The notes: generated by a model from the letters alone, not told the origin. A DNA stretch of 64,000 nucleotides from Mytilus californianus (GCF_021869535.1 NW_026262701.1:104594001-104658000); one strand, 5' to 3'. Positions 23,648 to 47,735 are shown, numbered from the stretch's first letter. Numbers and translations are program-made.

Positions 23648-26600
23648 ATGCCCTACGCTAATCAACCTACTGTAACTTTAACAGAATTAACAGACGAGAA
23701 TCTTAAATTTACCCTTGAAGATACTGATTTGAGGTTACTAAAACACTAAATTAATATACATGTACAATGTATCTGCTATGATTCTAAAATTCAGATTCTG
23801 ATACAGGTGAACAGTTCAAAAGAGGATGAATTCAAGTGATTTAATAAAAAAAAAAAGCAAAACTTTTTTTTTCCTTCAAATTAGATCATTTGGAATCTTA
23901 TCATACTGGCAACATAGATTTTTACATGGTGTAATGACATTGCTAAAGTAAAAATTATCAAATAATCATAATATAATGCTTTATTATCCATCTACAGTAG
24001 TGTCTGGTAAATATTCCGTCCGTCCGGTTAACCTGCCCACTCCCATTCACTTACGTAATTGTCACTTCCGTGAATATTTCGTCTGCTATTTTATTCATAG
24101 GAACTGTGCTTATCATCACTATATGTCAAATTTTAAAGAAAAATCCTTTATTTCGAAAATATCTAGTGATATATCATGTACATATAATACAGTTCCTAAA
24201 GCTAACAATAATCCAATTAAAATTAAAATAAAAACACAGGGGACCCACTTGTTTTGTTGATTTTAAAATTTATTTCAGATATTTTCGGGCAAATGAGATA
24301 AACTACTCAAAATTGATTTGTGGGTGAACTGATTTACATTAAATTTGATACAATTTGTATATAATTAAGCAGAAATACAAACAATCAAAGCCTTGTGTGG
24401 GCGGCTTTACCAGACTGCATCATACATATTTCTGTACTCGGTCACAACTTTGACTATTACGTGCAATTGCATGCGTGACTTATGTACATTTAAAAAGAGA
24501 AGGAAATTTTAAGCCTTATAACAATACAATAAGTAACATTGGTGAAAAGTAAAACATTGAAAAATAAAAATATATTACAGTGATTTTTTTCTTTTATTTT
24601 GTGTCGATTGTTATCCTATGTATATTTCTTGGTAAAACTATGTACATGTTATGCAGTGTTTAAAATATTTGTGAAAGAGCAGATATAGAAATGTACTCTT
24701 TGAAGGGGTCAACTGTTGTACAAAGGATTGCTGATGTTGGTAGTAGGTTCATTTGTACTATGTGTGCGAATAAAATGAGAATTTGTAAGAATCTTTATTG
24801 GTTTGAATTTGTTTACAGTGGTTAGAATGTTTATGTCTTGTTCAGCTGTCTGATGTAATAAGAAGATCTTTAGAGTAAATTGCTAAATGTTGGTGTATAA
24901 TTGTATAGAATACTACTAGTCTGGTTTGTATACATCTTATTTGCAGTGTAGGCCACACTGTAAGTGTTCAATATGAATAAGAAGCATGGTATGAGTGCCA
25001 ATGAGACAACTCTCCATCCAAGTCACAATGTATAAAAAGTAAACAATTATAGGTCAAAGTACCTAAACTGAAAGGTCATAGACCAAAATGGAAGATTGGG
25101 ATTTAGGTCCAAAAGTTTTTTTACAGAAATAATTTTGGTCATTTTTTTTGGATCAGTTGCTTAATCGCCATTTTGCACTTGTTTCTGGATCCTTGCTTAT
25201 ATCCCTATTTTGGAATCTGCGACACTTGAACTGTTGACATCATTCAACGATCACTTTTCCTTTGTGGATTCATTCATTTTCTCTTGTGACATCAAAATTT
25301 ATGGCAACTTCTGTGATGTCAATCAATGAAGGACGAATATATAGTGATAGAGGGTAGGAATGCCTTTTACCATCAGGCATCAAAAGATCATTTTCGGCTA
25401 CCGTTAGCATCAAATTGGTTAAAATTTTATTGTGATTTGTCAAAATATCTTTATCCTGATTTGTCAGAGGTTTCAAATAATTAACCGTTACCGTTATTTT
25501 TGGAAAGAATTTAACGTGACTCGTCAAAATCAGTCGATTTTTTATCGTCATAAAGAAAGTGTCCTTTTTATCGTCATGCACCAAAAATTACTGTTAACGT
25601 CATTTGGCAAGATTTTTTACCTTTATTCGTCATGGAGGTACCCCTATTAAGACCCTCGTGATAACGTGTATGGTGTATTGCTTTACAAAAAAAACAAAAA
25701 AAATTATTAACATGATTAAATTCTCATCCTTATTCTGCTGAAATGTCATCTGGCACTGCAATGCTGAATCATTCCCATGTAGGTCATGGTATTTTGCTAT
25801 TATTATATGAAGTTATTTTGATGTAAACAAATGACTTGTCCAATGTTTTCAGGTAACTTCATACTCACATTAAAGTATTTTTTTGGATAAAGAATAAGAT
25901 ATATATATAAAAAACAAATGGTGTTCGGAAAGATATACACAGACATGTGAAATTTACATTGGTTGAAATTTCTGGCAGAAAATAATAGTACAATCTTACT
26001 TTCAAAATCAGAATTCTTTACTGACTGTGACGAGGATGGAAATGTTTTGTTTTTTAATGAAAAAAGCATTTAAAGTTTCTATACATGAGCCTTTACGATA
26101 AAACTTTTTGTCTAGGAATGAACTTGTGCAGTTGACGACTGATTATATTTCATTTTATTCGTTTTACAGTGTTGCAAATGCTGTTAGAAGAGTATGCATA
26201 GCTGAAGTTCCAACCATGGGTAAATATGATATGAAATTATGTAGCATTTATATATATGTTATTTTAAATTTTTTTGAAAAAGACATGGTAACTTATATGT
26301 TTATCTTTCACAAAAACTATAAAGAAAGAAACCTCAGTGAAATTTCCATAATGATATGAAAAAAATTAAGAAACAAAGATTTGAATTTCATTTTACAGTC
26401 TGTTGCAAGTCAGAGAGAGGGTTGAAACACGTATAACTCTGCCACACAGTTTAATGTTCCTGTCTGAAGCCAAGGCTTGTAGTGCAGGGGCTTTTTTTCA
26501 TTTATATTATTTACCTAACCTGTTAGATATATATACTTGAATATATTGTTCCTTAGCAAATAAATTTTTTTTGAAGTATTACTATTTATGTGAAAAGGTA

Positions 26601-29600
26601 AGATATCAAATATAAGCAGTGAATAAGAGTATTTAAGTATTTTTTCAATATCTTATGCTTGTGTAAGATATTGAATAATATTTGGTACAAGCTATAAAAA
26701 TAAGAAGATGTGGTATGTTTGCCAATGAGACAACTCTCCACAAGAGACCAAATGACACAGAAATTATGTATTGATATCAAAGTGGATTCCCACACATTTT
26801 TCAATAACTATTGTTCCAATTCTTTCCTATGGCATCTAACCTCACCAACAACAATGAAGTTGGGTAAGTCACTAAATCTATACTCACTGAATTGTATGTC
26901 AATTAATACCTCTCATGGCTATGTAAATACATGAAATATGCACAAATGAACTAATTTGACAGTATGATTGACAACTGTCATGATTTACAAATAAATACTC
27001 AAAGGTTTGGTCATTTAATGGAATTATCTTTACTTAAATGCCAATCATAATTGACCACAGTTAAAATATCTTGTCTAACATAATTGGACAGACAATGTAT
27101 TACACAACTCAATACACAACTTAAAACACAATTCTTGACCTCAATATTGTATGTAAGATGGTTGGTATAATATAGAATGATAGATTGAGTTATTTAAATG
27201 TATAAATAATTTTGATCTACACTACATGAAATCATATTGTAAATTATGTGTCGAGGATGAATGAATTAGTGTAAGTAACATGTATTATTTTCAAAGAATC
27301 ACTCTCATTTGATATAAATATTCACAATTTAAATTGTTTGATAAAAAAAAAAAATGTATGCAACATGGTTGGACTGAAAAAATCAATGTTTGTCTCGCCT
27401 CTGCTAGTTTGAAGAAGTGAGACTTATGCATACTGTTTCCATTGGGGATGGCGTCAACAATGTTTTAGTTTATGATTAGGTATATGTTTAACATTATTTT
27501 TCTACAATTGTCCTATTATTTGAATACAGTTAGAATTAAACATGGTGAATTAGTAAAATTGAGATTTGATTTTCCTACGTTTATGATTTTTATGTAAGAT
27601 GAGGTTTGTTTTCAGCAATAGATTGGGTACAGATAGAATCCAATTCTACTGTGTTATTTGACGAGTTTCTGTCCCACAGAATTGGTTTGATACCGCTGAC
27701 CAGTGACGAAATAGTGGACAGGATGCAGTATTCTAGAGTAAGATCTAAAGGTCTTATACCAATGTTGCTTTTTTTTAACATGTATTGTAAATGTCAGCAG
27801 ACATAAAATAAAAAGTAAAAAGAGGCATATACTGGTGTGAAGGCAAGATTAGTTTAAATGAAATACTTATCTTAATCGTTTTAAACATTTGATTATATAT
27901 CATAGTAGAAGAGAGTAAAGTTTAAAAGATGAATATATAATTTAAATAATGTTTAGAGTACACAGTGACACAAGGTGTTCACTTTATTATTACTCTTGTG
28001 GTGAATTTTCACAATTAATGCTGATGATTTTATAAAATAAGGAGATGTGGTATGGTTGCCAATGAGACAACCATCCACCAAAGTTTAAATGAAGTGGATG
28101 TTAGCAATTATAAGCCTCAGTACAGCCTTCAACATTAAGAAAAGTGTATAATTCACTTTGAAATATCTGTCTGTTTATTCATTAGATATTATCAGAGTGT
28201 TGTCACCCTTAATCAACACCAATCATCCTGTTTCAATCAGATTCACTATTCACCAGCTGTGGTGAATTTTAACAAATCACCTTGTGTGTACAAGAAGTGT
28301 ATTTCTCGACTTTTCATTAAAACATATCAGCCGATTTGTTAACAACCCATAGCTACTAAAAGATTTTACATATATAATATTTTTTATCAGGTACATTTTT
28401 TGTACAAAAAAAAACTGGGAAAAAGGAGGATATGGTTTGATTAATTTATCAGAAAGTTTTGCCTTTGATATGACTGTCAAAAGAAAGTCTACACAAACAG
28501 AACATTCAACCTTTAGGCTAACTGTAAATTTAAAAAAAAATTGCAAAGTTTTTATTATTGAGCAAGATAGATTTTGCAAAAATAGAAATTCACATTTAAA
28601 ATTTTTGATAGCCTTATTTGTATGCACATTTCCTAAAATTGCAATTTTTAACAATCTTCATTATAAATACATGTGAAAATTTCTGAATTTACTTTATATA
28701 ACTAATTATTTTCACATTTGTTATCAGGATTGTACATGTGAAGAGTTTTGCCCAGAGTGTTCAGTAGAGTTCACATTGGATATGAAATGTAACGACGACC
28801 AGACCACCCACGTAACTAGTGCACATCTCATTTCCAGTAATCCTAAATGTGTTCCTGTAAGTAATTACACCCATGCAACTTATTGTTCAAGGTATTTTGT
28901 TCTTGGTCCGTCTGTTATCACTTTGCTGTTGCTAAAATAACACTTTCATTTCAAGTTTGAACACTTCTAAAATCTTGAATGTGGTCCACTTTTCTAAAAA
29001 TGGAAGATGGAAATATTTTTTGGGGTGGGAGTAGGGTGTGTATATTTTCATTGAACTAAGGTATGTACATTTTATCACATCTTCCTTGATGAAATTAGTC
29101 CTAAGTGAAGTTTTTTTTTCTCATCTACTGTCACAGAATGGTCGTGTAAAGTTGTTTTGACTATACCAAATTTCTAGCTTTTGGAATATTTTCCCTATAT
29201 TGTTCTTAAAATAATAAACAAGTTGCTTTTTTTAAAAAAAAGACAATACGTGAACCTTAGAACTTTTTTATTCTAATTATTAATTCAACTGAATAAGAAA
29301 TTATATATCAGTGTTTAGATATAAGAAGATGTGGTATGAGTGCCAATGAGACAACTCTCCATCCAAGTAAAAATTTATAAAAGTAAACCATTATAGGTCA
29401 CAGTACGGTCTTCAACACGGAGCCTTGGCTCACACCGAACAGTAAGCTATAAAGGGCCCCAAAAAATTACTAGTGTAAAACCATTCAAACGGGAAAACTA
29501 ACGGTCTAATCTATATTTAAAAAAAATGGTTATGTGTGTGGAAGATAATATTTTCTTTTTATTGTAAATCATTACAATTTTGGCATGTTGAGAGAAGTGT

Positions 29601-32600
29601 TAAATATAAAGCAATGAGGAAAAAAATAGATTCCCAGACGTATAATTTCTTAAAGAATAATAATGATTCAAAACATGGGGGACACATGTACCTTCTTCCA
29701 AAAATTCATAAAGTTAATCTAGAAATAAGTAATAAGGCATTGCGAACTGGTCAGCTAGCAGGACACATTAATGTTTGTTACCGACCAATCATCAATAAAT
29801 GCAACTCTCCTGCGAGAGATACTTATACTTGATCTAATTATAAAACCATTATTGAAGAGGCATAACTTTTACATTCAAGATAAAAATATTCCATTAATAA
29901 AATAGAGTCACACGAGGTCAAAAAAGAATGCATTCTTATTGCCTATGATGTACGTCAAGGTACACAAATATGATCATTGATAATTTAGAAGAAACTGTTA
30001 TCAATGCATTAGAATTAATTGACACACAGGACAATATACTTTAAAGATTCTCAACAAAATAGATTTAACTGCATTTGTTAAATTAATTTTTAGAAACAAT
30101 GAATTTGAGTTTAATGGACTGTTATAAACACATTATAGGAGCGCCCATGGGTGGTATATTTTCACCAACATGCACAGATCTGCATCTGTCTGTCCTATTC
30201 ATTAAAACCTTAGATAAGTTCCAATGGAGAGAAAACATCAAATTACACTGTCAATAGGGATGATGGTTTTATGGTCTTCACAGGCAAATTAGAGCAAGTT
30301 GAAGATTTCTTTAACCTAGCAAACGAAATTGACCATCTACTTTAGTTCTAATATGAGGTGTCGACATCTAGTATGACCTATATAGAGGGTGGTAAAAGGT
30401 TATTTTCGTGCAACGTTTTCGGCCTTTTTATTTCACGTGATTTCGTGTTTCGACATTTTATTTCTTGTTTTCTCGTGTTTGGTTCGACATGCGTGCTTCG
30501 TGTATCTTTCCTTAATTATTTTCCGTGTTTCGTGTCGGTACTCTTATTTTTTCGTGCTTGTCCCGCATTTGATTAAAAAGTAAACCGGGGCTAATTCAAA
30601 GTCAGCCTAGATATTGTTTTAAAATATAAAGTAATTAACTGGTCCCAAGATATTTATTAATAGCCTATTGTATTACTATGACAAATCGTATGCAACTAGA
30701 GGACGCTAAAAAGTGACCACATGCAGGGTCGCCATGTCAATTTATAATGACTGCATGATCTCCAAGAACGGCTGAGTAATAACTTTTGGTACTTTTTTCC
30801 TAAATATTTTTATTCCTTGGCTTCGTTTTTCCAGTGTGTTTTTTTCCGTGCAACGTTTTTGCAATTTGTTATTTCATGTGTTTCCGTGTTCAGACCCCTC
30901 CCCCCTTTTTTTACCACCCTCTATTTAGATACCGAAGTGTACAAAGGTGATCGATTCCATAATAATGGAATTCTTGATGTTAAGTCACGTATATTAAAAA
31001 CGCAGAAACGTATGGTCAATATTTACCAATCACTAGTGCACATCCAAAACACACATAAATTTAATAGTATTAATTTACAGTGTGTGAATAATATAAGAAA
31101 TAATAGTGACATACATGAATTAATTAAATAAATTTAATTAGCTTACAAGATTGATAGAGAATACTGTAAAAAGGAAACAGTAAAAGTTGTAAAAAATGTA
31201 TATTAACGAATAGTCTTTTAATATTTTACGTGTTTTATTTTCATTTGAAACAGATTTTTATGCCCCCGCCGTACCGGTCGGGGCATTAAGTTTTACCCTT
31301 GTCCGTCTGTACGTACGTACGTCCGTACGTCCCGAAATTGGTTTCCGTTCTCTAACTTGAGTTTGCCTCAACCAAATGTTATGAAACTTATACACAATGC
31401 TTATTACCACAAAACACAGATAAAGTTTGAATTTTGGTGGCGTCACTTTAACCGATCTAGAGTTATGCCCCTTTATAAAAGGAAATATTGCAAAATTTTT
31501 AGTTTCTGTTCTCTAACTTAAGTTTGCCTCAACCAAATGTTATGAAACTTATACACAATGCTTATTACCACAAAACACAGATCAAGTTTGAATTTTGGTG
31601 GTGTCACTTTAACCGATCTAGAGTTATGCCCCTTTATAAAAGGAAAAATTGCAAAATTTTTATTTTCTTCTAAATATCAAGTTTATATAATATATTTTTA
31701 AAATTGGAGTTATCTTCCTTTGACCATGATTATAGTTGAATCAACTACAATCAATGCTTTATACAATGCAATGTTTAATTTTGACTACCACTGATAAAAC
31801 ACAGATCAAGTTGAATTTGGGTAGTGTCACTTTAACCATTATTGAGTTATGCCCCTTTATAAATAGAAAGATTGCAAAATTTTTTAGTTTCCATTCTGTA
31901 ACTGAAGTTTTACCCAGCCAAACATTGTGAAACCTATACACAATATTCATTCCAACAAAACTCAGTAAAGATCAAGTACATTTTTTTTGTTTCAGTTCTC
32001 TAACTTGAGTTTGCCTCAACCAAATGTTATGAAACTTATACACAATGCTAATTACTACATAATACAGATTAAGTACGAAATTAGGTGGCAACACTTTTAC
32101 CATTCTAGAGTTATGTCCCATTATAAACATAAAAATTGCTGAATTTTTTAGTTTGTCTCAACCAAATGTTGTAAAACTTATACACAACCATTCTAGAGTT
32201 ATGCGTCATTACAAATAGAAAAATTGCTGAATTTTTAGTTTCTGTTCTCTACTTAAGTTAGCCTCAACCAAATGTTATGAGACTTACACACAATGCTTAT
32301 TACCACAAAACTCAGATCAAGTTCAAATTTGGGTAGTGTCACTTTTACCGTTCTTCAGTTATGTCCCTTTATAACTATATGATATGCAAGCAGGGGCATC
32401 ATCTGTGTCCACATGTGGACACTATCCACATTTATATTTATCTGATTTGTCAAAATGACAAGTATGCATAATGATTTTATTGTTACAAATAAAATCCCAA
32501 AGCCCACTATAACTCATTATGTAGAAGCCTTAGCACTATTTTAAAATATCTCTCTGTGAATATCTAGACACAGATGTTTGATACCATATGCATAGGTCGT

Positions 32601-35600
32601 TATAATTAAATCTTGACCATTTATCTTTTACTTGTTTATCAAAGGGTACAACTGTCAACTTTGCTCAAGTCAGTAAACCCTTGCAATGCATAAAATGTAG
32701 CTTTACAATAAATATACATGTTTGAAAAGGATCTATAGATTGCTTATTATCATATATCAGATAAGTGAATTAGCGATCTGTGAAAATTCTTTATTGTCAT
32801 GTTTTAAATATCTTAGATACCCCGTATGGAGGTGCTCTTAATTGCAGGAAGCTAATACAGATAAGATGAATAGGTGTTCCGAATGAACAATAATTTAGCT
32901 TCCGAATATTCCTCCATAGACTATATTTCTAACTAATTTATATGCGTGAACCAAAAATGATCTATTCCCAATTTTCAGTCAATGATACCTTCATCAATGC
33001 AGCAATTTGAGAAAGCATTCAATTTAATGAATCCACAATAGTGGAGCCAAAACACATCCACTTGTGGCAAAGTGGTCTTAGTATAAAGATAAGGAGATGT
33101 GGTATGATTGCCAATAACTATCCACCAAAGCTCAAATGAAGTGGATGTACATGTTTCCAGGACACCAACTTATGTACCATCAACGTCAAGAGATTGTAAG
33201 CAATTATAGGCAACCGTACGGCCTTCAACAATGAGAAAAATTCATACCATATAGTCAGCTATTAAAGGCCCCAGCATGAAAAATATGAAACAACTCAATT
33301 GAGAAAAGTAGCTCATCTACAGTAAACACTAGCCTGTCAACACTAAGGTTGTGAGATTCAAAACCCAGCTCATGGCAAGATGGGTTTGACTCCGATTTTA
33401 ATTGACTAGTCTTTCCAGTTTTACTGCTGAAAGGTCAGTGGTTCTTCCCAGGTAATCTAGCTTCTTCCAATTATAAAAACTGACCACCATGAAGTAGCCA
33501 AGTCTGTTGAAAGTTGTGTTACATTGAATTGAATATATTATTAATTATGATAAAACTTTATTGATAAAACATACAATATGTATAAAGTATTGATGAGGAT
33601 TAAAATTAGTCAGTGTTTATTTTACATTTAAAAGAAAGATTTCTTAGCATCTAAAATTTGGCATTTAACTTTGACATTTGTTTTTCAAAAAAAGGTAGCA
33701 CATAAGTATCTGGATAAAATAAATCACTTGAAAAAGTAACATAACAAATTAATAGGAAAAAAAAGGTAATCAAATAGAGATTCTTAACAAGATAAGCAAA
33801 CAGTTTCCGAGCTAAACGTTTGACATTAAATAAAAGAAGCTTTATTCTGAATGGTCTATTGCGAATCGAAGCAAATCTTCTGGAGGAATTCTTTGTGCAG
33901 GATTTGTTTTAAAACAGTGCCACATTATTTCTATTATTTCTGGACTACCCTCTGTAGGTTCAGGTGGTAATTGGCCTTGCATCATGTCCATAAATACTTG
34001 AAATGGATTAGTACCAGTTCTGTCAAAAAAGGCTGGTTCCAATGCCAACATTTCATAAATGATACACCCAACAGTCCATGAAAACGCTTGGTTATTTGGT
34101 TCTTCTTGTCTTAATACTTCAGGAGCCTCGTAGATTGCTGAATCTGCTCCCATCATCTCAGTCATCGGGTTATCATCTTCTTCAAGAAAAATTATTCCCT
34201 TTGGACCGTAAAAATGTATCATACTACTGTTTACTTTTGTAGAGGTAGTTATCTTTCCGTTTAGTGCAAATTCCAACAGAGTCTTGGTAATACGCCATAT
34301 AAAAACTTCTTGGAATCTAGTGTTTTGAAGTTTGCATTGTACAATTCTATCTTTAAGAGTATCTGTCGCTTCATAAACACAACAGACAGAGTTCTTGTCT
34401 TCAAAAGAGGTCATGAAGCTTGGATTATCCAATTCTGGCTTGATACCTATAGGATAAAGGCAAAATATTTATTAATATAAAAAAACGATATGTGGTATGA
34501 TTGCCAATGAGACAACTATCAACCAGAGACCAAAAGAGGAGGATGTAAATAACTATAAGACATTGTATGGCCTTCAACATGGAGCAATACCCATATTATA
34601 TAGTGAGCTATATAAAGAACCGAGCATGACAAAATGTGAAACAATTCAAAAGAGAAAAACAATGGCTGGATTTATGCTAAAACAATAAAAAAAACAACAT
34701 TAAGGCAAAAAGTAAGTAATGACAACCACTGAGAAAGGTGGCTGGGTATGACAACTTTGCTTTTACAAATATTATAGCTATAGCTGACCTACTAGACTAT
34801 TTTACAGTGTCTGTAGTATTCAAAAATATTAACAAAATAAACTCTTTGTCCATGGGAATTTAAAAAGATTTTGTATTCTGCTATATTTGGATATATGGTT
34901 CAGTGATAAAGAGTAAGTATTGATTCTTGTTTACTTATGTCTAGTGGCAAATATTTCATGGATTTTCAGGATTATATCAACAACTATAGTGTGTATTAAT
35001 TAAATAAGTAGATTCCGCAAAAATGATGGATGTTGATAAAGGGTAGGAAATTTGTACTGCCATTTATAAAGGAGGATAGGGGCAGAAATTAAGCAATGCA
35101 CAAGCTACTTTAAGGATGTCTCTTAGAGTTGTTGTAAGTTTTCTTTTACTCGTAAAGAGTTTTGGCTTCTTCAAACACTTCCCCTTTCGTCTAGACAAGG
35201 GTGCATATTTATTCATCCTGCACTGCTAGATATTCAATACTTAACATAGGCTTTACTAGTACTGTTGACAGTCAGCCATATTAAGTATTAGGCAATAAGT
35301 CAGGAAAGATTAAAAAAATATGGTTTATAAAGCCTTAAACATGTTTAACAATCTTATTTAACTGCAAAAAAGATGCAGATAATAAATACATTTTGCAATG
35401 CAGTTTATGGAATCAAGGATTTGTATCGTGAGATCTCACGATAAAAATCCTTGAAGAAATTTTTAAAAAACCAGGAAATTGGTGGTTTTTTTTGGTACCA
35501 CAGTGTTAAAATTGAAAATTTATCAATATAGGTTTGAAAAAATTTCAATGCAGTCAATGTTGTAGTCATAGTGGATATATATGGACAAGGTACACATCTA

Positions 35601-38600
35601 GGATTGTGTGCTGCATATGGTCATGAAGAATTGCCCCAGTCACTGAATTCCCATCATGTCAAAAGAATAAAAATCAAGATTCAGTGAAAAATATGTTTAA
35701 ATGGAAAAAGTAAATTTGTATGCAATACCTTTAGATTTGACTTTGATGATACAGGGGATCCCATCAAAGATACATGTAGCTGGGTAGGTTTGTTTCTGAT
35801 GATTTATGCCTTCTATTTTTTCTGCATCAATAACAAAATCCTTCAAGTTGAGAACACTGACTGTTCTCATTAGAGGTTTAGGTAGGGGAAGTGACTCATC
35901 TGCCTAGAAATGACAAAAAGTATGTTCAATGAAATTAAAATAAGAAATGATGATACAGAAAAAAATGTGCATTATTATATGTATGATTTAAATTTCTAAT
36001 AATGAAATGAAATACAAAAAAAGTATAATTTGTGTCTGGATATAAATATATCACACTTGCTTCTTCTTACTATTATTTTTTCATATACAGGTTAATGAGG
36101 TTCGGTACATTTTTTTTTTTAATTCGAAATAAAATCCTGTGTGACAGAACTATAAAATAAGAACATTCAACAAAATATGTATCCAACTACCCAGTATACA
36201 AATGTGGCATTTTGCACAACATAATTGTGTATGTTAGATGTGTGTTGATGTCACTGTGTTGCTGTGCCATTGACGTATATCCCACATCTCCTTTTATTCA
36301 TTTATCCAGTTGAGGAGAAGTTAAAAGGAGAAATTGATATTTGTTTTATTGATCAGTGAATTTGACTATGTTAGTTTGATGGGTGGATCATGAAATCAGC
36401 AATCCTTCGTGTCCAAGATAAAACCCTTTCTTTGTATGGTAACTTCACCCGCCTTTTATTTTTTCAAGACATTTTGGAGAATGAAAAGAATTGAAAACAA
36501 TTTTGTTTTGTTGAAGTGGGAAAATTCTTAGGAAAAAATTTACTACGCTGTTTGTTCCTGATTATTTTTAGTACTGAAATTTCTAAGATAAAGTACTTTC
36601 TAGAGATTGTGAAATTTCCAGTAGCTTTGTGTTGTACATCCATTGATGCCAAACAAACCAACTTACAGAAAAACTTTATAAAAGGAATTTGGGTTGATTA
36701 ATTTTGATCATCAAAACCTCTGAGATATGCTGTAATATTTACCTGCTTGATCCTTTTGAGTGTAATCGCATGTAGAATAGTGTTCCTGCATATACTCTGT
36801 AAACTTGGTGGATTAGTCACTGGAACAGTTCTACTAAATGTCTTTGTTAAGGGGTTAAATTGTTCCGACATGATGTGTTAATTCAAAGGTTTTCCATTTT
36901 TCTGTAAACAGAAAGTAAAAATGTGAATCTGTAATCAGTAATATGAAATGTGAACTTAAACAGAAAGTAGAAATGTGAAACAGGGTACATCAAAATTTGC
37001 TATATGGATTCTTTTATTTTCATGGGTACCGATTTTCATGAATTGAAAAATATTTGTATCTTGTGAATATTTGATTTCCTGGTTTTGCAAAAGTTTGTAT
37101 GCAGCCTTTACAAAATTTATACTTGGTGGCACATTTAAATTCTTCTCCCTGTACCCACATAATCTATAAAAGTTGTTACTCAACATTTGTTCATGAGAGG
37201 ACAGTTTTCATACAGTTCCTCTAGACTCAGTTCCTGCGTTATAACTTACAGTGGTGAAGTGGGTGCACCCCTCTGTTTGAGAGAAATTTTTTTTGTAATG
37301 TATATTTTAATCATGATATACTATGGATTGTGAAGATATGTTTTTTTTTTAAACTCTTTATTTAATTTTTTTTTAACGACCGCAAAAAATTTTGTGGTCG
37401 TATATTGGTATCACGTCGTCTTTGTCAGTGTCAGCGTCGTCCGAAGACATTTGGTTTCTGGACAATAACTTTAGTATAAGTAAATAGAAATCTATAAAAT
37501 TTAAACACAAGGTTTATAACCACAAAAGGAAGGTTGGGATTGATTTTAGGGGTTATGGTCCTAACAGTTTATGAATTAGGGGCCAAAATAAGCATTTTTC
37601 TAGTTTCCAGACAATACTTTGTGGAACGGTGTATGGATCTCTCTGAAATTATACCACAAGTTTCCATACCACATAGGAATGATTAGGATTGGCTTTGGGG
37701 GGTAATGGCTCAAACCGTTTAGGAATTAGGGGGAAAAACAAGGGTTTCCTTGTTAATGGACAATTACTTTTAAGTACAATGTTAAGTTCGGATTACCTCC
37801 CTTACACTGCTTTTAAATTATGTATAAAGAAATGTTGTACTGTCTTGAAGTGATTAGCTGTCAATTTATTTTTAGAAGTTACTATTAAAAATGCTGATTA
37901 AGGAATATTAATTTTAGACATGATTATGTATGTCATTTTCTATTTTAAGACTTTTATGATGTATTTAAATAGGTAATTATGGTTGCAAACTCCATTGAAA
38001 TTTGAATTGAGATAATGACCATATCTTGAAGGAAAGATTTTTTTTTTGGAAAAAGGGGAGGGGGAGGTGAAAAAAATTGGGGGGGGGGGTAACCAAGAAA
38101 TTGGGGGGGGGAACAATTTTTTTTTCTCATTTCTCATTTCTCAGAAATTAAAAAGAAAATTTCTTCAAATATTTTTTTTTTTTTTTATGCAAAAAAAAAA
38201 GGGGGTAAACATTTATTTTTTTTTTTTGGGGGGGGGGGGGGCGGGTGTCAATTTCGCAACAGCATAGTGTATTGCACAAAAGCAAAAAAATTGAATATAA
38301 ATTCAAATCATATAACCAATTCTAAGTTCTTTGACTACAGTTATTCTGTGTCAGAAACCTATTATGTGTCAAATATTTAATTACAATCCAAATTCAGACC
38401 TGTATCAAGTGCGAATACTGTGTCCTTTTTTGCCCCAACTGTTCAGGGTTGGACCTCTGCGGTCGTTATCAGCTGCGCTCGGCGAAGCAATTTATTAAGT
38501 TTTTTACTCCTTTTAATAGGTTTTGACCTGGATTTATTCTTATTCCATTTATATTTGTTGTTGAAAAAAGAACAAAGTTGTCTTGAAATGCAAAGTTGTT

Positions 38601-41600
38601 CCACAGTTATCAAGTTTTAAGTAATTTAGTAGTAATCTGCGTAGAAATTCCTTGCAGATATGAACTGATTATTACATAAACATAACTAAAATCCTAGTTC
38701 AAGGCTAGATTTAAAATCAGTTTATATATCACTCTTCAATAGGCCTGTAGTTTGCAAACACCACATCTGTTTTATTTATTCTATTTATAGTCTGTATAAT
38801 GATTTCAAGATAATGTGATAGTGTTTGATAAACAGTTTAAATCATTTGATCTGGATAATATAATTATTATAAACTGGTGTTATATTGTTGTTATATCCAT
38901 AGGTTACATCTAAAAGAAAAGAAGAAGCAAGCGAATATGAAGAAACAGACGGTAAGTTTAAAGTGCATATAAACTTGATAAAAAGTAACAAATAGTGTCC
39001 CCAATCCCAATTAATATGGCATAGTTATTGTGCATTTCCAGCCTATCTGGCCTTTTATAGCTGACTGTGCGGTATGGGCTTTGCTCATTGTTGAAGGCCG
39101 TATGGTGACCTATAGTTGTTAATTTCTGTGTCATTTGGTCTCTTGTGGAGAGTTGTCCCATTGGCAATCATATCACATCTTCTTTTTTATAAATACATGT
39201 ACCTACAAATCTTAATGAGTATCTTGATGTTTAAATCTTTGTTATTTTGTAAACAGTAACACTGATCTAATTTATATTTTGAAGCAATTAAAGGCTGTCT
39301 TTATATGGAAATTTTAATGTCTAAGTTCATAAAACATATAATTTATAAATACAAAATTCAAAATACCGCAAAATTGGCTGCACATGAATTCATTGGCAAT
39401 TCCTATTTTGTGAAAATTATTTTATTTGTACAAAAATATCTGACTTCTTACTACAGTATGTAACGAGCACAATCATTGATTTTACTTAAAGTTATGTTGG
39501 AAGGACAAAAAAGTTACTGTTTCCATTGATAATTCATGCATATTGTTCAAAAAATTATAAAGAAATTGTGCCTCAGGTTAATCTGACAGCCAACATATAA
39601 CTTATGAAAACACAAAAATAACATGGCAGGACTGGTTACATGAAATATAATGAGATTAAAACTACTTTGTCAATCAAAACAATACACAATCAAGTGAGTG
39701 CAAAAATGGAAATATAACATAAAGTATAAATTACACACAGACTTATTCAGGTGTTAGCTTTCTTGTAGCTGGTCAGTTTCATGTTGAATTTAACTTGCAG
39801 CTTTGTAAATATCTGTTTAGTGGTATTGAAATCAATATTGGTTTTGGAGAAACAGCATACTTTAATTGACTTTATCTTGGATATAACAAAGTTCACCTAA
39901 GCTATTTTTCATCAACTGGAATTGTTTATTTTTTTGTAGATATCTTAATAGTAAAATTAAGAAAAGGGCAGGAATTGAAAGTTAGAGCTTTTGCAAGGAA
40001 AGGATTTGCCAAGGAGCATGCTAAGTGGAACCCAACCTGTGGCGTAGCATTTGAGTATGATCCAGATAATGCACTGAGACACACAGTCTACCCCAAACCA
40101 GAAGAATGGTATGTATTTTCAAGTAACAGTATTTCAATTCAAATCTTGTGTCATAAGACTATCAATTACTATACCGCAATATTCATATGATTTTGTAAAA
40201 AATTAACCTTATAAGGTCCTTCATGAACCTCTTTTAGATTAGGACCGAAATCTTTCATACAAAAATGTTAGATACTCTTAATCCAAGTAATTAAGTTTAA
40301 ACATATAGATATCTTACCCAAAAATATATAATGTAATGATAAATATGATACACTATAAAAATAAGATGTGGTATGATTGCCAATGAGACAACTCTCCACA
40401 AGAAACCAAGTGACACAGAAATTAACAACTATAGGTCACCATATGGCCTTCAACAATGAGCAAAGCCCATACCTCATAGTCAGCTTTAAAAGGCCTGAAA
40501 TGACAAATGTAAAACAATTCAAACGAGAAAACTAACGGCCTAATTTATGTACAAACTAATAAACGAAAAACAAGTATGTTACACAGCAACAAACAACAAC
40601 CACTCAATTACGAGGCTCCTGACTTGGGACAGGCACATACTGAATGTGGTGGGGTTAAATTTGTTTGAAGGGACCAACCCTCCCCCTAACCTGGGACAGT
40701 GGTGTAACAGTACAACATAAGTATAAACTATAAAAATCAGTTGAAAAAGGCTTAACTCATCAGACAGATACAAATAGAAATACATCTAACAAAAACACAG
40801 AGTGGACGTGGCAGGGTACTTATTCATCCCCACAACAAAAAGACACTAAGTACAGATCTGAGAGTACTCACAGTTACTGACAACTAGTTCAAAGCCAATA
40901 ATAACTTGTGCAGTGCCAAGATACAGGTATCGACACTGCTTGTTTGGGATATAGTATCCAGTTTTAAGAAAAGGCTTTTACCTGTTCAAATAAAAGTTCA
41001 TAGCATATTTGCAACAAATACTTTCATATATTCTCCTTAAATGAATCCCTATGATCATTACAGGCCAAAGAGTGAGTACACAGAACTTGAAGAAGAAGAA
41101 AGTATGTATGATAAACAATTACATTATACAGTCATTAATTTGAATCACCAAACTCACATCTCAAAAATTCGTTTCTCTTCCTTGTCACTCAAAATCAAAT
41201 ATTAGAAATTCAAAAGTATTAAACACTGAAGAGTAATAAACCAATATAAGACCGAAAAAGAAATAAGGAGTAACGCACAGTTGATGTCTGCGTTACCGCT
41301 TTTTGGTAAATTTCTCCTAGTGTGACATACTTGTGGATATTCTTCTAATTAGAAATACATACAAGTTAGACCTTGATGTATTCTAATCCACAACTTTAAG
41401 ATAAGATTTCTAGAGTTACTGTCTAACAAAGCACCTGTACAAAACCTATCACCTTCATGAGATCAATAACATTTCCACCGCAGGCTTGATGTTTTGGCCC
41501 TCTGGTCAACAACTAACTGTACAGCTCACTTTATGTTATAACTATATCAGTAGGTATATCAAGTACCATGGTTCATCTGAATTTTAATACCTCCATGCAA

Positions 41601-42395
41601 AAGTTGTCGTCTTTGAACAAAAGGTTAGGGGTTTGATTCACTAGAAGGTCTCACCAAAGACATAATTATTTGTATTTAATGTTTTCTGCCAAACACACAG
41701 GAGTAAGAGCAAAGACTGACTCGCCTGGATTTAGAATATTTTTTTTCAATATTTTCAGAGAATTTAATTAAATCTGGAGTCTGTTTATGACTCTTTTAAA
41801 CTGAAACTAAAATAGGACTAAAACAAACAACAGATCTGAACAATGATGCACTAGAGCATACTTAAATGAAGCAAAACTTGACCAAAATCAAATCAAAATG
41901 TCCACACATCATACCTAAATGTACTAAAATCAAAATTAAACTGGTATGAGACTTCAAATTTATTTTTTTTAGAAATGGGGATAGCATTATTGCACTTGTT
42001 TCTTCTTGTATAAATTACTGACATGTACAAGATCAGTTGGCAATGCAAATCAAAAATAAATATAATTTTTTTTATTCATGTACCCTCTGGTGTTTTCTAG
42101 TATGTATAAAAAAAAGTGGCATGAAACCCTATATAAATCAATAAGAATCTTTATTTTTCTCTTTCCCTCCCAACTAGTACATATCTATTAATCTGAATAT
42201 TTTATTTCTTTTTCAGCACAAGCAGAACCAAATCCACTTGGAAAAGCTAACAAATTTTTCTACAATGTTGAATCATGTGGTTCATTGAGACCTGAAAATA
42301 TTATGTTTTCAACGTTATCTGTGCTGAAGAAAAAACTTAGTGATTTACAAACTCAACTCAGTCATGAAATACAAAGTGATGCACTGGCTATTTGA
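23648..42395 (+). CDS. POLR2C: DNA-directed RNA polymerase II subunit RPB3, 273 aa, 8 coding exons
   Basis: Exons (plus): 23648-23733, 26170-26219, 27616-27737, 28728-28856, 38903-38951, 39940-40108, 41064-41101, 42217-42395. Total 822 nt, all GT-AG. Reads MPYANQPTV..., [44 protein letters not shown], the Zn motif [41 protein letters not shown], and ends [22 protein letters not shown]. Confidence 0.98.
29580..31060 (+). pseudogene. Degenerate Penelope-like element reverse transcriptase, split by a MITE
   Basis: Peptide remnants [25 protein letters not shown] and RDDGFMV. SMTY|[11 protein letters not shown] is interrupted at 30382-30924. Many stops and frameshifts. Confidence 0.7.
30382..30924. 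mobile_element. MITE with 16-bp TIR inserted in the Penelope-like RT relic
   Basis: ATAGAGGGTGGTAAAA at 30382-30397 and TTTTACCACCCTCTAT at 30909-30924. The TSD is not cleanly resolvable. Confidence 0.7.
31255..32436 (+). mobile_element. Non-autonomous HINE-like family C element with internal array of about 130-150-bp monomers
   Basis: 5' ATGCCCC is inverted to the 3' GGGGCAT. (GTAC/GTCC)n microsatellite. Repeated monomer AAACTTATACACAATGCTTATTACCACAAAACACAGATCAAG. Perfect 18-bp palindrome GTGTCCACATGTGGACAC at 32405-32422. Confidence 0.75.
33325..33525 (+). mobile_element. tRNA-derived SINE with a V-domain-like central core (degenerate)
   Basis: B-box-like GGTTGTGAGATTCAAAACCC, then GTGGTTCTTCCCAGGTAATCTAGCTTCTTCC, which resembles a conserved SINE core as recalled. 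Confidence 0.45.
33842..36871 (-). CDS. Nested antisense gene: N-terminal BC-box/SOCS-box-like motif fused to a NEK-like pseudokinase domain, 302 aa
   Basis: Exons (minus): 36743-36871 (ATG, preceded by an acceptor at 36901), 35729-35903, 33842-34446 (TAA). Total 909 nt, phases 0 and 1, canonical GT-AG, no internal stops. [12 protein letters not shown] is a BC-box; LPLPKPL is Cul5-box-like. Kinase-like motifs: [32 protein letters not shown]. No HRD and no DFG. AATAAA (tttatt on plus) lies about 33556-33561. Confidence 0.85.
37375..38496 (-). mobile_element. HINE-like family B copy (reverse orientation) just upstream of the nested gene
   Basis: Hairpin end ACGACCGCAAAAAATTTTGTGGTCGTATA at the left, and TGCCCCAACTGTTCAGGGTTGGACCTCTGCGGTCG at the right. 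Internal G/A homopolymer tract at 38040-38240. Confidence 0.75.
40357..40908 (-). mobile_element. Retroposon-tail family A, long copy; others at about 6001, 24977, 26699, 28036, 29321, 33085, 34483, 39047-39190 and 43108-43670
   Basis: All copies share one fixed end (ATAAGAAGATGTGGTATGATTGCCAATGAGACAACTCTCC) and extend for variable lengths (about 30-560 bp), consistent with 5' truncation. Confidence 0.75.
41605..41740 (+). mobile_element. Degenerate tRNA-derived SINE; a related reverse copy lies at about 58990-59200
   Basis: GGTTAGGGGTTTGATTC (B-box-like) followed by CAAAGAC...TTGTATT...GGAGTAAGAGCAAAGACTG. The reverse copy contains GAAAAGCAGCAAATACCAATTTTAGTCTT. Confidence 0.4.
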
Positions 42396-42598
42396 TTCTG
42401 TTTGCACATTATGTAGAATTATTGTCAGCAGTCATGAAAACAAGAAAAATATCTTTTTTATACATGTGCTTCTATTGACTTTCAGCTAGGCAGCTTTGAT
42501 TTTTAAACATGAACTTAGGAATGTCCATGAAGACACATTTGATTTGTTGAACCACAAGTTATGTGAAAAAAAAATCTGTTGTAACTTGTAAATATAGT

Positions 42599-42604
42599 AA
42601 TAAA
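42599..42604 (+). terminator. Candidate polyadenylation signal of POLR2C
   Basis: AATAAA about 200 nt after the stop codon, followed by T/GT-rich sequence. Confidence 0.4.
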
Positions 42605-43107
42605 GGACAGTGTTCATTTTGTAAATTTTTGTTTTTCCACACAACTTCTGGAAGAAAACAAAAATGTATAACAGTATGTGTAATGATATATACAATCACT
42701 TAGTCTATCTGTCTGGTATTTGTCTAGGCAATACATATAATTATATAGTACCTGCTGTCATATAAGCTATTCTCCATATGATGTTTGGCAATGACCTAAA
42801 AGCATATCCTGACCTTGATTGATAAGTAATAAGATGGATCTAATATATGAAATTCAGATACTTATTTTGGTAAAAGTGAACCTTGTCCTTTGCTTGTCTG
42901 GTATCTCATTAATCATGTTAATGGTACTTTGTTTCATATTGGGTATATCACTATTATAAATTTTATCCATAATATGTGTACTTCTTGTGGAAGTATGATC
43001 ACTATAACAGGAACTAAAAGGAAAACTAAAATCCATTTTTTAAAGTATTATGTTGATAAATACAACCAGTTAAAGAGAATCTTGAAATCTGATATGTCTT
43101 ACTTATG

Positions 43108-43670
43108 AAAATAAGAAGATGTGGTATGATTGTCAATGAGACAACTCTCCACCAGAGACCAAAAGAAATAGAAGATTACGACTATAGGTCACTGTACGGC
43201 CTTCAACAATGAGTAAAACCCATACTGCATAGTCAGCTATAAAAGGCCCAAGAATGACAAATGTATAACAATTCAAACGAGAAAACTAACGGCCTAATTT
43301 ATGTACAAAACAGTGAACAAAAAACAAATATGATATACAGCAACAAACGACAACCACTGAATTACAGGCTCCTGACTTGAGGCAGGCACATACAGAATGT
43401 GGCTGGGTTAAACTAGTTTTTGGGGCCAAACCCTCCCCTAACCTGGGACTGGTGTAACAGTACAACATAAGAACAAACTATAAAAATTCAGTTGAAAAAG
43501 GCTTAACTCATCAGATCAATACAAAGCAGAGAAACACAGACTGCATGTGGCAGGATATTTATACATCCCCACAACAAAAAAGACATTAAGTACAGATCTG
43601 AGAGTACTCGTAGTTACTGACAGCTAGTTCAAAGCCAATAACAACTAATAAAAAAATCATGCATCTAAGA
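43108..43670 (-). mobile_element. Retroposon-tail family A, long copy
   Basis: Collinear with 40357-40908 over about 550 bp. Confidence 0.8.
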
Positions 43671-46555
43671 CTATTATTCAAAATAATTTTAGAATGGGCA
43701 TTGCAAAATGGTAGTGTTTTGCATGGCTCCTTTCTGAAATCTGAAAAGCAGAGCTCCCAATATAATAGCAAGAAGAATGCATGATTTCTGTTTTAGGAAA
43801 CAAAGCCTTCTTTGGTAGATTATTATTATCTTTAATCATTTTCCCTTAACTATGTTTTGTTGGGTCCACCTAGGTAAGAGGTAATATTTAAAAAAAATCA
43901 TATAAAACATTCAAGCTTAAACTAACAAATGCCAAAAAGTAATCTCTAAAGACTTATTTTGCTGCCTGTAAAAAAAAGATTGATTACTGATTGCTTAATG
44001 TCCAAGCATGTTTAGTACAAGAACAAATTAATAATTAATGCCAATAAAAACACACACAACAAAATTATGAGTGGTAAATAAATTATTGTTTTGGCTTCAC
44101 ACATAATTCTTTTGTTAGATAGACATGGAACATGTATATTAGAATAATATATAAAGATGCATTATATCAATACTGAACAATCTCTGCTGCTCAAAATGTT
44201 TTTTAATTGTAGCGTGCTTTACATCCAGTGGCAAATATTTCAAACATATTCATGACGAGAACGAAATGACAAGTGAAAAGTAGGTAAGTTCTGCATAGAA
44301 GGTTAATAGAGAGGATGGACTGCCAATGGAAAATGAGGGGATCCTGTAATTACATATTTTTTGGTTTTTCTTGGAAGCTCCCATGATACTAAGGAGAAAA
44401 TCCTTGACAATCATAGGATCAAAGAGCTGTTTTATGTTCCTTTGGAATTGTAACAAACGATGAAGAATTTGATCTTTTTTTCAATTCTACTGGATGCCAA
44501 TATTATATAAATGTCATTACAAACAATATTATATTGCTGTGTCTGCAAATGTTCCAAGAAACCTCTTTCCAAATTATTAACATTTATTTTATCAGTAATC
44601 AAAATCGTGCTTCAGAGTTACTGTGAAACTGCATACTAGTACTCTTATATTGGTGGTGTGAATCCAATATTTTTTTTAATCGAAATCCGCGATCGATATC
44701 GTATTCATTCAGAGTATTTCTACACTTGTTACACTCCCGTTTCTTTAGTCTGCGTATATATTAGACACCTATCTATGAAGGCATACAGCCTACCTATGCA
44801 AAACAAAGATGATCTAGTACCAAACCTTATTACTTTTATCTGTTATCTAACTTTTTATTTTTTTTTCTTATTATTATTATTATTGTTCGTTCTAGCAGCA
44901 ATATTTGATATTAACATGTTCATGACTAATTTTTGGGAATGGGTATGTATTTTTCATGCAAAATTTCAGTCCTGTCTTTTTATTTCAAAATTCTTCTTTT
45001 ACACCTAAAATAATTTTCTCTAAGTGAGAGTTCTGTTTAGTGTTGTGTCCTCCTTTCTTTTTAAAACCGTTTGTATTATTTTTCTATTTTTTTGCACTGG
45101 TATTGTTAGAAACTTCTAATGAAAGGTTTCGATCTTTACGAAATCTATACGTGAAACTGCAATTCATGTGAGAAAAAAAACAACCAAATAGTTTTCTGAC
45201 AGTTTCATTTTCTTTCTTTTTTTTTATCTGAACGACTACAACCGGAATTGCCACACCCAAATTAATAAAAAATAAAGTTCATAAATTAAATTACAGATAA
45301 TATTCTTTAAAGATTATAAGAAATCGCTATCAACAAATAAACCTATCCTCAAAATTAAAAAAGAACCGACATACGAAAATCTTTTTTCTTACTATAGCTA
45401 TCAAGAAATAATAAATAAGGTTTATACAACGATTTACAACACCAAAGTTGATTTGTATGCCTTCAATAAAATCTACGAAAAAATTAGGGTTAAATTACCC
45501 TTTTTCAAACACATTTCTGTCCATGTCTACTTTTTTGAAGATGAGCACCCCTTTAAAATCCCATTGTAATGTCGTTTCATCGATTCAAACTTCGAAAATA
45601 TCGGCACAAATTAGGATCCATCCTCTTTCCCATATGTAACTCCTAGAACCTCTTGTCAAAACTTATGAATAAGCGTCCGGCGGTTGATTAATTGTTTAAA
45701 AAAGCACTAAACTTTGCTACATATGAAGAGAGGAAATATAGGGTATTGTAAATCACTGCGACAGCAACCCAACAATGGGAAATAAAAAAAACCTTAGGTC
45801 AACATATTAGGTAATATATTATATTTTCTAGTTTTGTCAAACTTCATCTTTTTTTTCCTGTCTCAAACCCGTTAATATATTATCTCATCAAATACAAAAT
45901 ATCGATTATCTATAATATTGTCTAAGTAAGTGCGTATAAAATCAATGTAATTGGGAAAAGGGTTTTCTTTAATTTCAATTGCTTTTTAGGGCTATGATCC
46001 GGAAATCGTAATCTGTATATGGTGTTGGGTTCTATAAACGCAACAGCGTATAAAAAAATAGAAAAAGAAAGACATTACTCACAAGTTGAAAAACGTTCGA
46101 CAGAAGCTTCCTCTCACATCCAAATGTAGAGTTAACGTCAAGGCGACAGTACGACACAATCATAGACTCGACAACGTCACAATCCGCTGGGTGTAATGCA
46201 AGTATTGTTATACATTGTGGCGAGGACGTGATTAACAGTATCCTTCGCCTCTCTTTTAAAACATCATAAATATGATAAACAGTCAAAAGCATATGGATTC
46301 TTTAATTATTAACATATGCCCTCTATTTTAAGTGTTCTTAAGTGTTATCCATTTAATTTTACAATAATTGTGCTTTATAAGGGCTGTCTTTTTATCTTAT
46401 TTTTCACAGTATAAGTTAGAGAAAAGAGGCGGCACACCTAAATGCAGTTATTGCAAGATTATATTAACGAGAGTAAGAACACATACAAGAGAAAATAAAA
46501 TGAAATATTAAAAACAAATTAATAGAAAAAAAAATCAAACATCAAATAAAAGGGA

Positions 46556-47735
46556 GGTTCTATGTAAGGGAATGGTCTCTCCTGGATTAAACATAGTTTT
46601 CATTTTCAAAATAACACATGCTAAAGTTCTATGTACGGGAATGGTTTCTCCTGGGGTAAACAGAGTTTTCATTTTCAAAATAAGATATGCCAAAGTTCTA
46701 TGTACGGGAATGGTTTCTCTTGGGTTAAACATAATTTTCATTTTCAAAATAACACATGCCAAAGTTCTATGTACTGGAATGGTTTCTCCTGGGGTAAACA
46801 TAGTTTTCATTTTCAAAATAACACATGCCAAATTTCTATGAACGGGAATGGTCTTTCCTGGGTTAAACATAATTTTCATTTTCAAAATAACACATGCCAA
46901 AGTTCTATGTACGGGAATGGTCTCTCCTGGTTAAACATAGTTTTCATTTTCAAAATAAAACATGCCAAAGTTCTATGTACGGGAATGGTCTATCCTGGGT
47001 TAAACATAATTTCATCATTCAAAATAACGCATGCCAAAGTTCTATGAACTGGAATGGTTTCTCCTGGGGTAAACATAGTTTTCATTTTCAAAATAACACA
47101 TGCCAAAGTTCTATGTACGGGAATGGTCTCTCCTAGGTTAAACATAATTTTCATTTTCAAAATAACACATGCCAAAGTTGTATGTACGGGAATGGTCTAT
47201 CCTGGGTTAAACATAATTTTCATTTTCAAAATAACACATGCCAAAGTTCTATGTACGGGAATGGTCTCTCCTGTGGTAAACATAGTTTTCATTTTCAAAA
47301 TAACACATGCCAAAGTTCTATGTACGGGAATGGTCTATCCTGGGTTAAACATAATTTTCATTTTCAAAATAACATATGCTAAAGTTCTATGTACGGGAGT
47401 GGTGTCTCTTGGGTTAAACATAGTTTTCATTTTCAAAATAACACATGCCAAAGTTCTATGTACGGGAATGGTTTCTCCTGGGGTATTACATAGTTTTCAT
47501 TTTCAAAATAACACATGCCAAAGTGCTATAGGTACTGGAATCGTCTCTCCTGGGGTAAACATAGTTTTCGTTTTCAAAATAAGATATGCCTAAGTTCTAT
47601 GTACGGGAGTATTCTCTCCTGGGGTAAACATAGTTTTTCATTTTCAAAATAACACGTGCAAAAGTTCTATGTACGGGAATGCATGGTCTCTCCTGGGGTA
47701 AACATAGTTTTTCCTTTTCAAAATAACACATGCCA
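46556..47735. repeat. 69-bp tandem array, about 17 copies
   Basis: Unit GCCAAAGTTCTATGTACGGGAATGGTCTCTCCTGGGGTAAACATAGTTTTCATTTTCAAAATAACACAT. The period was measured as 69 (46689 to 46758). Confidence 0.95.

Follow-up and report, generated by a model that had tools for sequence, protein, structure and literature searches.

What is encoded by the gene that lies antisense between the exons of RPB3 in the mussel Mytilus californianus, and is its product the kinase that its database name implies? The question is raised by a stretch of 64,000 nucleotides (nt) of the M. californianus genome (GCF_021869535.1 NW_026262701.1:104594001-104658000), referred to here as the window, which contains no assembly gaps (N). 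Its minus strand carries a functional gene of four exons, three of them coding, for a protein in which an N-terminal SOCS box precedes a NEK-like kinase fold that has lost its catalytic motifs. SOCS-box proteins are substrate adaptors of Elongin BC-Cul5 E3 ligases. Judged from the sequence, the protein is probably a Cullin-5/Elongin BC substrate receptor that uses the dead NEK-like kinase fold as its recognition module. We put the probability of this reading at roughly 0.65.

The gene, its product and its transcripts

The coding sequence is distributed over three minus-strand exons (36871..36743, 35903..35729 and 34446..33842), which join in frame as 909 nt encoding 302 amino acids (aa) and a stop codon. 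Each intron between them has GT..AG borders, and the first coding intron, which is in phase 0, separates the BC box from the LPLP motif. There are 0 differences between the spliced product and RefSeq XP_052059857.1 (P0195), which is named M. californianus "serine/threonine-protein kinase Nek6-like". An earlier reading of this DNA from its sequence only had predicted three exons forming a stop-free open reading frame (ORF) of 302 aa, and the GT-AG introns, the in-frame join and the identity with RefSeq bear this out. It was also right that the ORF list of the window reveals the last exon alone, as a frame of 196 aa. Its description of the gene as hidden does not stand: RefSeq already models exactly this protein, and with the same 302-aa model in M. 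galloprovincialis, M. edulis and M. trossulus the gene is annotated in four Mytilus species. The features of the gene are the following.

46083..46113, minus strand: exon 1, in the 5' untranslated region (UTR), at least 31 nt; GT donor at 46082-46081; matched at 100% by bases 14-44 of transcript contig L001, which run straight on into 36900
36901..46082, minus strand: intron 1, 9.2 kb, enclosing the last two RPB3 coding segments identified, which are on the opposite strand
36743..36900, minus strand: exon 2, which carries a 4-codon upstream ORF, the start codon of the main frame (ATG at 36871) and the codons for residues 1-43 with the BC box
36776..36805, minus strand: BC box, residues 23-32, a predicted Elongin C-binding helix (from the translation; predicted helix 24-36)
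35729..35903, minus strand: exon 3, residues 44-101 and the first base of codon 102; LPLP, linker and N-lobe strands up to the beta3 lysine, Lys97
35880..35891, minus strand: LPLP, residues 48-51, the Cul5-box core (from the translation)
35742..35744, minus strand: Lys97, the beta3 lysine equivalent (CIIK), aligned with the VAVK lysine of the canonical NEK6/7-like kinase P0098
33842..34446, minus strand: last coding exon, residues 102-302 and the stop codon; the remainder of the pseudokinase domain
34223..34249, minus strand: degenerate catalytic loop TTSTKVNSS, residues 168-176, in place of HRDLKPxN (from alignment and translation)
33869..34141, minus strand: C-lobe, Pfam Pkinase match over residues 204-294, with APE at 34118-34126; the best-conserved part of the family
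33700..33841, minus strand: 3' UTR; transcript contigs reach at least 33759 (L001) and 33700 (X1)

The gene is transcribed and spliced; its expression level and strand rest mainly on contigs. Logan transcript contig L001 (1061 nt, ~97% identical) is colinear with the three coding exons and crosses both predicted junctions exactly. Its bases 1-13 are adapter sequence. The 31 nt that match 46113..46083 are joined in it to the acceptor at 36901/36900, and the loose end of contig X2 beyond 36901 matches the same 5' UTR exon. Junctions 34446/35729 and 35903/36743 are both present in contigs from two runs belonging to different studies, one a contig of depth 22 and the other from a marine metatranscriptome. 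The borders in these contigs read CT..AC on the plus strand, that is, GT..AG on the minus strand. Both junctions had been predicted beforehand, and L001 and the two independent runs confirm them. In all, 16 near-identical transcripts or proteins are on record.

Several features of the transcript and its surroundings were observed in passing. The upstream ORF in exon 2 (ATG GAA AAC CTT TGA, 4 codons, 36882-36896, minus strand) has a stop codon that ends 10 nt before the main ATG. A tandem repeat of 27 bp x 3 (36901-36979) abuts the exon-2 acceptor. A 69-bp minisatellite of 17 copies (89% matches, 46557-47737) lies ~450 bp upstream of the first exon and gives rise to long repetitive ORFs on both strands. 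Within intron 3, RNA contigs from three of four runs cover 34477-34698 and 34921-35031 at enormous depth and with many variants. These two stretches look like copies of dispersed repeats expressed elsewhere in the genome, outside the pseudokinase transcript. Logan transcripts of M. galloprovincialis type (P0197, P0200 and P0203-P0206) contain ORFs of 190-208 aa that have no SOCS box and begin either within intron 3 or a short way into the last exon. They may derive from unspliced or alternative-start transcripts and so yield a box-less pseudokinase. No paralogues of the gene were found in the window.

A SOCS box in front of a degenerate kinase fold

The exact product scores 26.0 bits with Pfam SOCS_box (PF07525; gathering cut-off 23.5) over residues 20-55; residues 1-70 alone score 29.7 bits and exon 2 alone scores 21.1 bits. 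When an N-terminal family profile of 20 members was compared with all PDB sequences, it found solved SOCS boxes only, namely ASB7 (E 1e-6), ASB9, ASB8, SOCS4 and SOCS2, and every match falls on the SOCS box of its PDB chain. The BC box and SOCS box claimed in the sequence-only reading therefore pass the Pfam threshold and are recovered by an independent profile search.

The two binding motifs are conserved across the family. The BC box (residues 23-32) fits the consensus (S/T/P)-L-x3-C-x3-(V/I/L). In alignment A2, whose 21 members range from cnidarians to molluscs, L24 and C28 of the box show 90% conservation or more, and L48 and P51 of LPLP do not vary. The BC-box motif is present in all full-length members except P0031 (RLQDLCRTVI) and the allele P0202, where the first residue falls outside S, T, P and A. 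The sequence-only reading had placed a Cul5-box-like LPxP motif after a phase-0 intron and had seen that the trailing aromatic-Leu is missing; both observations are correct. AlphaFold2 predicts helices at residues 24-36, 41-47 and 52-59 in the full-length model as well as in the isolated module (module pLDDT, the predicted local distance difference test, 78.5). In a Foldseek search with the 70-residue module, the top matches are SOCS/BC-box chains solved with Elongin BC. The module superposes on ASB7 with a root-mean-square deviation of 1.1 A over 41 columns (probability 0.98), on ASB9 with 1.7 A and on ASB8 with 2.3 A, the Foldseek E-values of these matches not being significant.

The remainder of the protein is modeled as a kinase fold related to NEK7. 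The full-length AlphaFold2 model has a pLDDT of 93.1 and a predicted template modeling score (pTM) of 0.88, and it lacks an alphaC helix. The best solved sequence matches are the C-lobes of NEK1 and NEK7. NEK7 is also the top structural match (Foldseek E 2e-13, template modeling score 0.58-0.66, ~21% identity), followed by NEK2; TRIB1 (5cem) is listed too, and ULK and MAPKAPK are included among the sequence and structure matches.

Alignment with two canonical NEK6/7-like kinases, P0098 and P0153, shows what has been kept and what has been lost. The beta3 Lys97, APE (209-211) and the arginine R287 of the C-lobe are still present. The glycine-loop site reads YPATC. The alphaC segment is wholly deleted, in agreement with the AlphaFold2 secondary structure. 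The HRDLK site is TTSTK with a two-residue deletion, the HRD Asp and the Asn being gone, and there is a deletion at the DLG/DFG site. Pfam Pkinase scores above threshold and covers only profile positions 160-258. The C-lobe is far better conserved than the N-lobe, and in several relatives the beta3 lysine is replaced by R, E or Q. The protein ends with ...RFAIDHSE directly after the last kinase helix (290-301) and thus has no C-terminal tail. The NEK-like fold, the CIIK lysine, the TSTKVNSS-type loop, the missing DFG and the shortened alphaC region, all suspected from the sequence at the outset, are borne out by the alignment, AlphaFold2 and Foldseek taken together.

The loss of catalytic motifs is not peculiar to the mussel protein. 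In a comparison of 206 proteins, HRD and DFG are absent from all those with the SOCS-box motif pair. A glycine-loop-like match is absent from all but two of them, and a single exception, in a 1579-aa protein, is a chance match. The canonical NEK-like matches keep the catalytic motifs and have no SOCS motif. Degeneration is thus a property of the whole family. Cnidarian-type proteins (~340-380 aa) still have an alphaC-like segment, which is deleted in the mollusc and annelid clade.

The coding sequence is under purifying selection, as had been proposed. The ratio of nonsynonymous to synonymous substitution (dN/dS), calculated by the method of Nei and Gojobori (NG86), is 0.11 against M. galloprovincialis (dS 0.40) and 0.11 against L001, an allele or sister sequence. 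Against transcript L002, a distant relative with 68% identity, it is ~0.13 with saturated dS. The N-terminal/SOCS region (codons 1-60) is the most constrained part, with an omega of 0.033, and orthologues are intact across phyla. Two maximum-likelihood comparisons with L002, at saturated dS, gave unstable dN/dS values of ~0.88-0.89; these were disregarded in favor of NG86 and the closer Mytilus pairs.

The family and its place within RPB3

An exhaustive profile search returned 27 representatives at E<1e-30, with more full-length members below that level. Members occur in bivalves (Mytilus, Pinctada, Tegillarca, Saccostrea and Dreissena) and gastropods (Patella, Elysia, Plakobranchus and Bradybaena). 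Outside the molluscs they are found in the annelid Owenia and in the cnidarians Nematostella, Actinia, Hydractinia and Rhopilema. No vertebrate or ecdysozoan member was found among named database records, which is no proof of absence. A word-indexed homologue search with alignment A2 gave six proteins and did not widen the taxonomic range; the exhaustive search, together with cluster look-ups, delimits the family.

Where members of the family have names, these are automatic (Nek6/7-like, hypothetical or uncharacterized). The literature searched contains no description of a SOCS-box/NEK-like pseudokinase family or of such an N-terminal SOCS box, which does not prove that none exists. Within that literature, the claim of the sequence-only reading that the architecture fits no named family holds. 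The gene models and Pfam matches are already public. The sequence is therefore not new; the gene is misnamed, and the SOCS-box subfamily to which it belongs is undescribed as far as the literature was searched.

In the window, the pseudokinase gene is interleaved with RPB3, for which the following was mapped.

23648..42395, plus strand: coding span of RPB3 (POLR2C), segments ~23648-23731, 26168-26218, 27615-27737, 28728-28859, 39939-40109 and 42252-42392

The RPB3 segments give fragmentary Pfam matches to RNA_pol_L and RNA_pol_A_bac, and orthologous RPB3 loci are annotated with both domains. The six segments leave ~26 RPB3 residues unaccounted for, possibly in small acidic exons that were missed, so that RPB3 may have a further small exon flanking the pseudokinase gene on one side or the other. 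The zinc-loop exon of RPB3 on one side and the next RPB3 segment, at 39.9 kb, on the other enclose the coding exons of the pseudokinase gene, which are antisense to them. The first description of the gene as lying antisense inside RPB3 holds for these coding exons. It fails for the first exon, which is located beyond the 3' end of RPB3. With a 5' UTR exon at 46.1 kb and an intron 1 that spans the last two RPB3 segments, the gene and RPB3 form a convergent, interleaved pair and not a simple nested one.

The same arrangement is seen in all molluscs checked, the gene being antisense within or overlapping RPB3 in six other species. In the four loci whose RPB3 exons were mapped (M. galloprovincialis, Pinctada imbricata, Dreissena polymorpha and Patella caerulea), the same pair of RPB3 coding segments encloses it. 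The gene overlaps RPB3 on the opposite strand in Bradybaena and Elysia. Its two coding introns fall after residue ~43 and just past the beta3 strand, at ~101. Mytilus, Dreissena and Bradybaena yielded both of these positions; the intron after ~43 is also found in Pinctada and Elysia and that after ~101 in Patella, with matching exon starts. The orthologues of Owenia, Rhopilema and Actinia consist of a single exon and are located elsewhere than RPB3, that of Actinia being intergenic and that of Rhopilema lying in an ankyrin gene. Since the RPB3 arrangement is shared by bivalves and gastropods and is not seen outside molluscs, the interleaving predates the bivalve-gastropod split and is mollusc-specific among the taxa seen. 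A literature search on a gene nested in POLR2C found nothing relevant.

There is a somewhat better than even chance that these genes represent an ancient, unnamed SOCS-box subfamily that arose before the cnidarian-bilaterian split and combines an N-terminal box with a NEK6/7-derived pseudokinase as the substrate-recognition module. Such a subfamily would survive in cnidarians, annelids and molluscs. It would have gained its introns in molluscs, where it would have occupied its antisense position between the exons of RPB3 from a time before the divergence of bivalves and gastropods.

Some observations concern the neighborhood of these genes. The intronless Owenia fusiformis orthologue (L008:6499-12634) is antisense inside a DCN1-like gene (UBA_4 and Cullin_binding), which encodes a cullin-neddylation factor. 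This placement is striking for a putative cullin-ligase receptor and may be a coincidence. In the window, a gene for a CID-domain protein (RPRD1/CREPT-like; Pfam CID 47 bits; 23062-23319, minus strand) is head-to-head with the start of RPB3 (23648-23731, plus strand) at a distance of ~330 bp. This suggests a bidirectional promoter shared by a factor that binds the C-terminal domain of RNA polymerase II and a subunit of that polymerase. The CID and CREPT neighbor is found next to RPB3 in M. galloprovincialis (L003) and Patella caerulea (L006) as well. Within an intron of RPB3, an ORF of 98 aa (29536-29832, plus strand) contains ...YLLPKIHK..., which is reminiscent of retroelement polymerases.

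A candidate ligase receptor and the alternatives

By analogy with the established role of SOCS boxes, the protein most likely binds Elongin BC and Cul5 and serves as a substrate receptor. It consists of a short, conserved N-terminal hairpin with an FNPxT motif, a complete ASB-like SOCS box made up of the BC helix and LPLP, and a kinase fold, probably derived from NEK6/7, that has lost its glycine loop, alphaC helix, HRD catalytic loop and DFG segment. The BC box would dock on Elongin C, together with Elongin B, and the LPLP box would recruit Cullin-5/Rbx2. The dead kinase domain, chiefly its near-invariant C-lobe around APE, alphaF and alphaG, would hold a protein partner for ubiquitination.

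Comparison with characterized proteins indicates where this predicted receptor would be conventional and where it would not. ASB7, ASB8 and ASB9 are receptors of the Cullin-5-RING ligase (CRL5). They share the spacing between BC box and LPxP with the mussel protein and provide the best solved profile matches. Unlike them, the mussel protein has its box at the N-terminus, not the C-terminus, and carries a dead kinase fold instead of ankyrin repeats; its mollusc forms also lack the trailing aromatic-Leu of the Cul5 box. Tribbles pseudokinases bring substrates to the COP1 ligase, which they recruit through a motif in the C-terminal tail. TRIB1-3 resemble the mussel protein in having a degenerate kinase fold, and TRIB1 is among its structural matches. 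However, the mussel protein has no C-terminal tail and is predicted to recruit Elongin BC and Cul5 through its N-terminal SOCS box.

A conceptual precedent, besides Tribbles, is NRBP1, which is not known to have a complete SOCS box around its BC box. NRBP1 is a pseudokinase that has a BC box and acts in an Elongin BC ligase as the substrate receptor (PMC12254500, PMC3365428). The BC box of NRBP1/2 is in the C-terminal half (PMC12254500), and a third source describes NRBP1 as closely related to WNK kinases (PMC12266122). The mussel protein resembles NRBP1 in joining a dead kinase fold to a predicted Elongin BC-binding motif, but it is NEK-like, not WNK-like, and its box is N-terminal. No NRBP chain appears among its best sequence or structure matches. 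In the literature searched, the exact architecture matches no named family, whereas the use of a pseudokinase as a BC-box substrate receptor is precedented by NRBP1.

Several observations weigh against a receptor role. The SOCS_box score is just ~2.5 bits over the threshold, and, while most relatives pass, some fall below it (Owenia 13.4, Rhopilema 18.3). The Cul5 box of the mollusc clade is without the trailing aromatic-Leu that cnidarian-type relatives retain. The SOCS box is N-terminal in every family member, whereas classical SOCS-box families carry it C-terminal to the substrate-binding domain. The Foldseek matches of the isolated module, a very short query, do not reach significance (E-values 0.3-4). 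In the single stranded RNA run, raw reads number only 1-2 and lie on the last exon, so the strand was inferred mainly from splice-site orientation in contigs.

It is possible, but unlikely, that the protein instead serves a NEK6/7-type pathway as a pseudokinase scaffold or decoy, in which case it would bind partners of active NEK6/7 allosterically and its SOCS box would mainly set its own turnover. The closest sequences and folds are those of NEK7, NEK1 and NEK2, and NEK6/NEK7 have C-lobe motifs in common with the mussel protein, whose C-lobe is much more conserved than its N-lobe. Transcripts such as P0197 and P0200, from M. galloprovincialis-type runs, do contain ORFs that lack the SOCS box. 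Language-model features place the protein nearest to a Tribbles-like cluster, which is a lead only. Unlike NEK6/NEK7, the mussel protein lacks the Gly loop, alphaC, HRD and DLG/DFG, has an added N-terminal SOCS box and falls in a separate group. Against the scaffold reading, the alphaC and N-lobe surfaces through which NEK7 undergoes regulated dimerization are deleted. Moreover, the SOCS region is the part under strongest constraint, and both binding motifs are kept from cnidarians to molluscs, which fits a ligase-recruiting role.

An improbable explanation is that the antisense interleaving with RPB3 is itself the function, convergent or overlapping transcripts coupling the expression of the two genes and the protein having a secondary role. 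The persistence of the arrangement in Mytilus, Pinctada, Dreissena, Patella, Bradybaena and Elysia, with the same two flanking RPB3 coding segments in each of the four mapped loci, would be expected in that case. Nested pairs are hard to separate by rearrangement, though, so that persistence alone does not establish a function. The protein is conserved outside molluscs despite being encoded there by intronless genes sited elsewhere (Owenia, Rhopilema and Actinia), and the strong dN/dS constraint shows that the protein matters.

That the protein is an active, atypical NEK-family kinase, as the database name "Nek6-like" implies, is very unlikely given that catalytic motifs are lost throughout the family. 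Lys97, APE and R287 are retained and Pfam Pkinase scores above threshold, but the protein has neither a Gly loop nor an alphaC helix to supply the Glu, lacks the Asp and Asn of the HRD loop, and is missing the entire DFG segment. The Pkinase match is limited to profile positions 160-258, and several relatives have R, E or Q in place of the beta3 lysine itself. The possibility that the ORF is decaying or spurious and has stayed open by chance, for which low read depth in one RNA run is the sole argument, is rejected in view of spliced transcripts in several runs, dN/dS of ~0.1, intact orthologues across phyla and a confident AlphaFold2 model.

The preferred reading, a Cullin-5/Elongin BC receptor with a dead kinase fold, bears on several questions beyond this locus. 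The labels Nek6-like and Nek7-like inflate NEK counts in invertebrate kinomes and mask a probable ubiquitin-ligase component. Separately from that reading, RPB3 and the pseudokinase gene form an unusually old overlapping gene pair, which might be useful as a rare genomic marker or for studying how nested genes persist. Nematostella is tractable and has a member of the family (LOC5509730), making the receptor hypothesis directly testable. The classes of SOCS-box protein are defined by the substrate-binding domain (SH2, ankyrin, WD40, SPRY, Rab and others), and to these would be added one with a kinase fold and the box at the N-terminus. If the reading is true, the family would constitute a new class of CRL5 receptor and, after NRBP1, a second and independent case of a dead kinase serving as an adaptor of an Elongin BC ligase.

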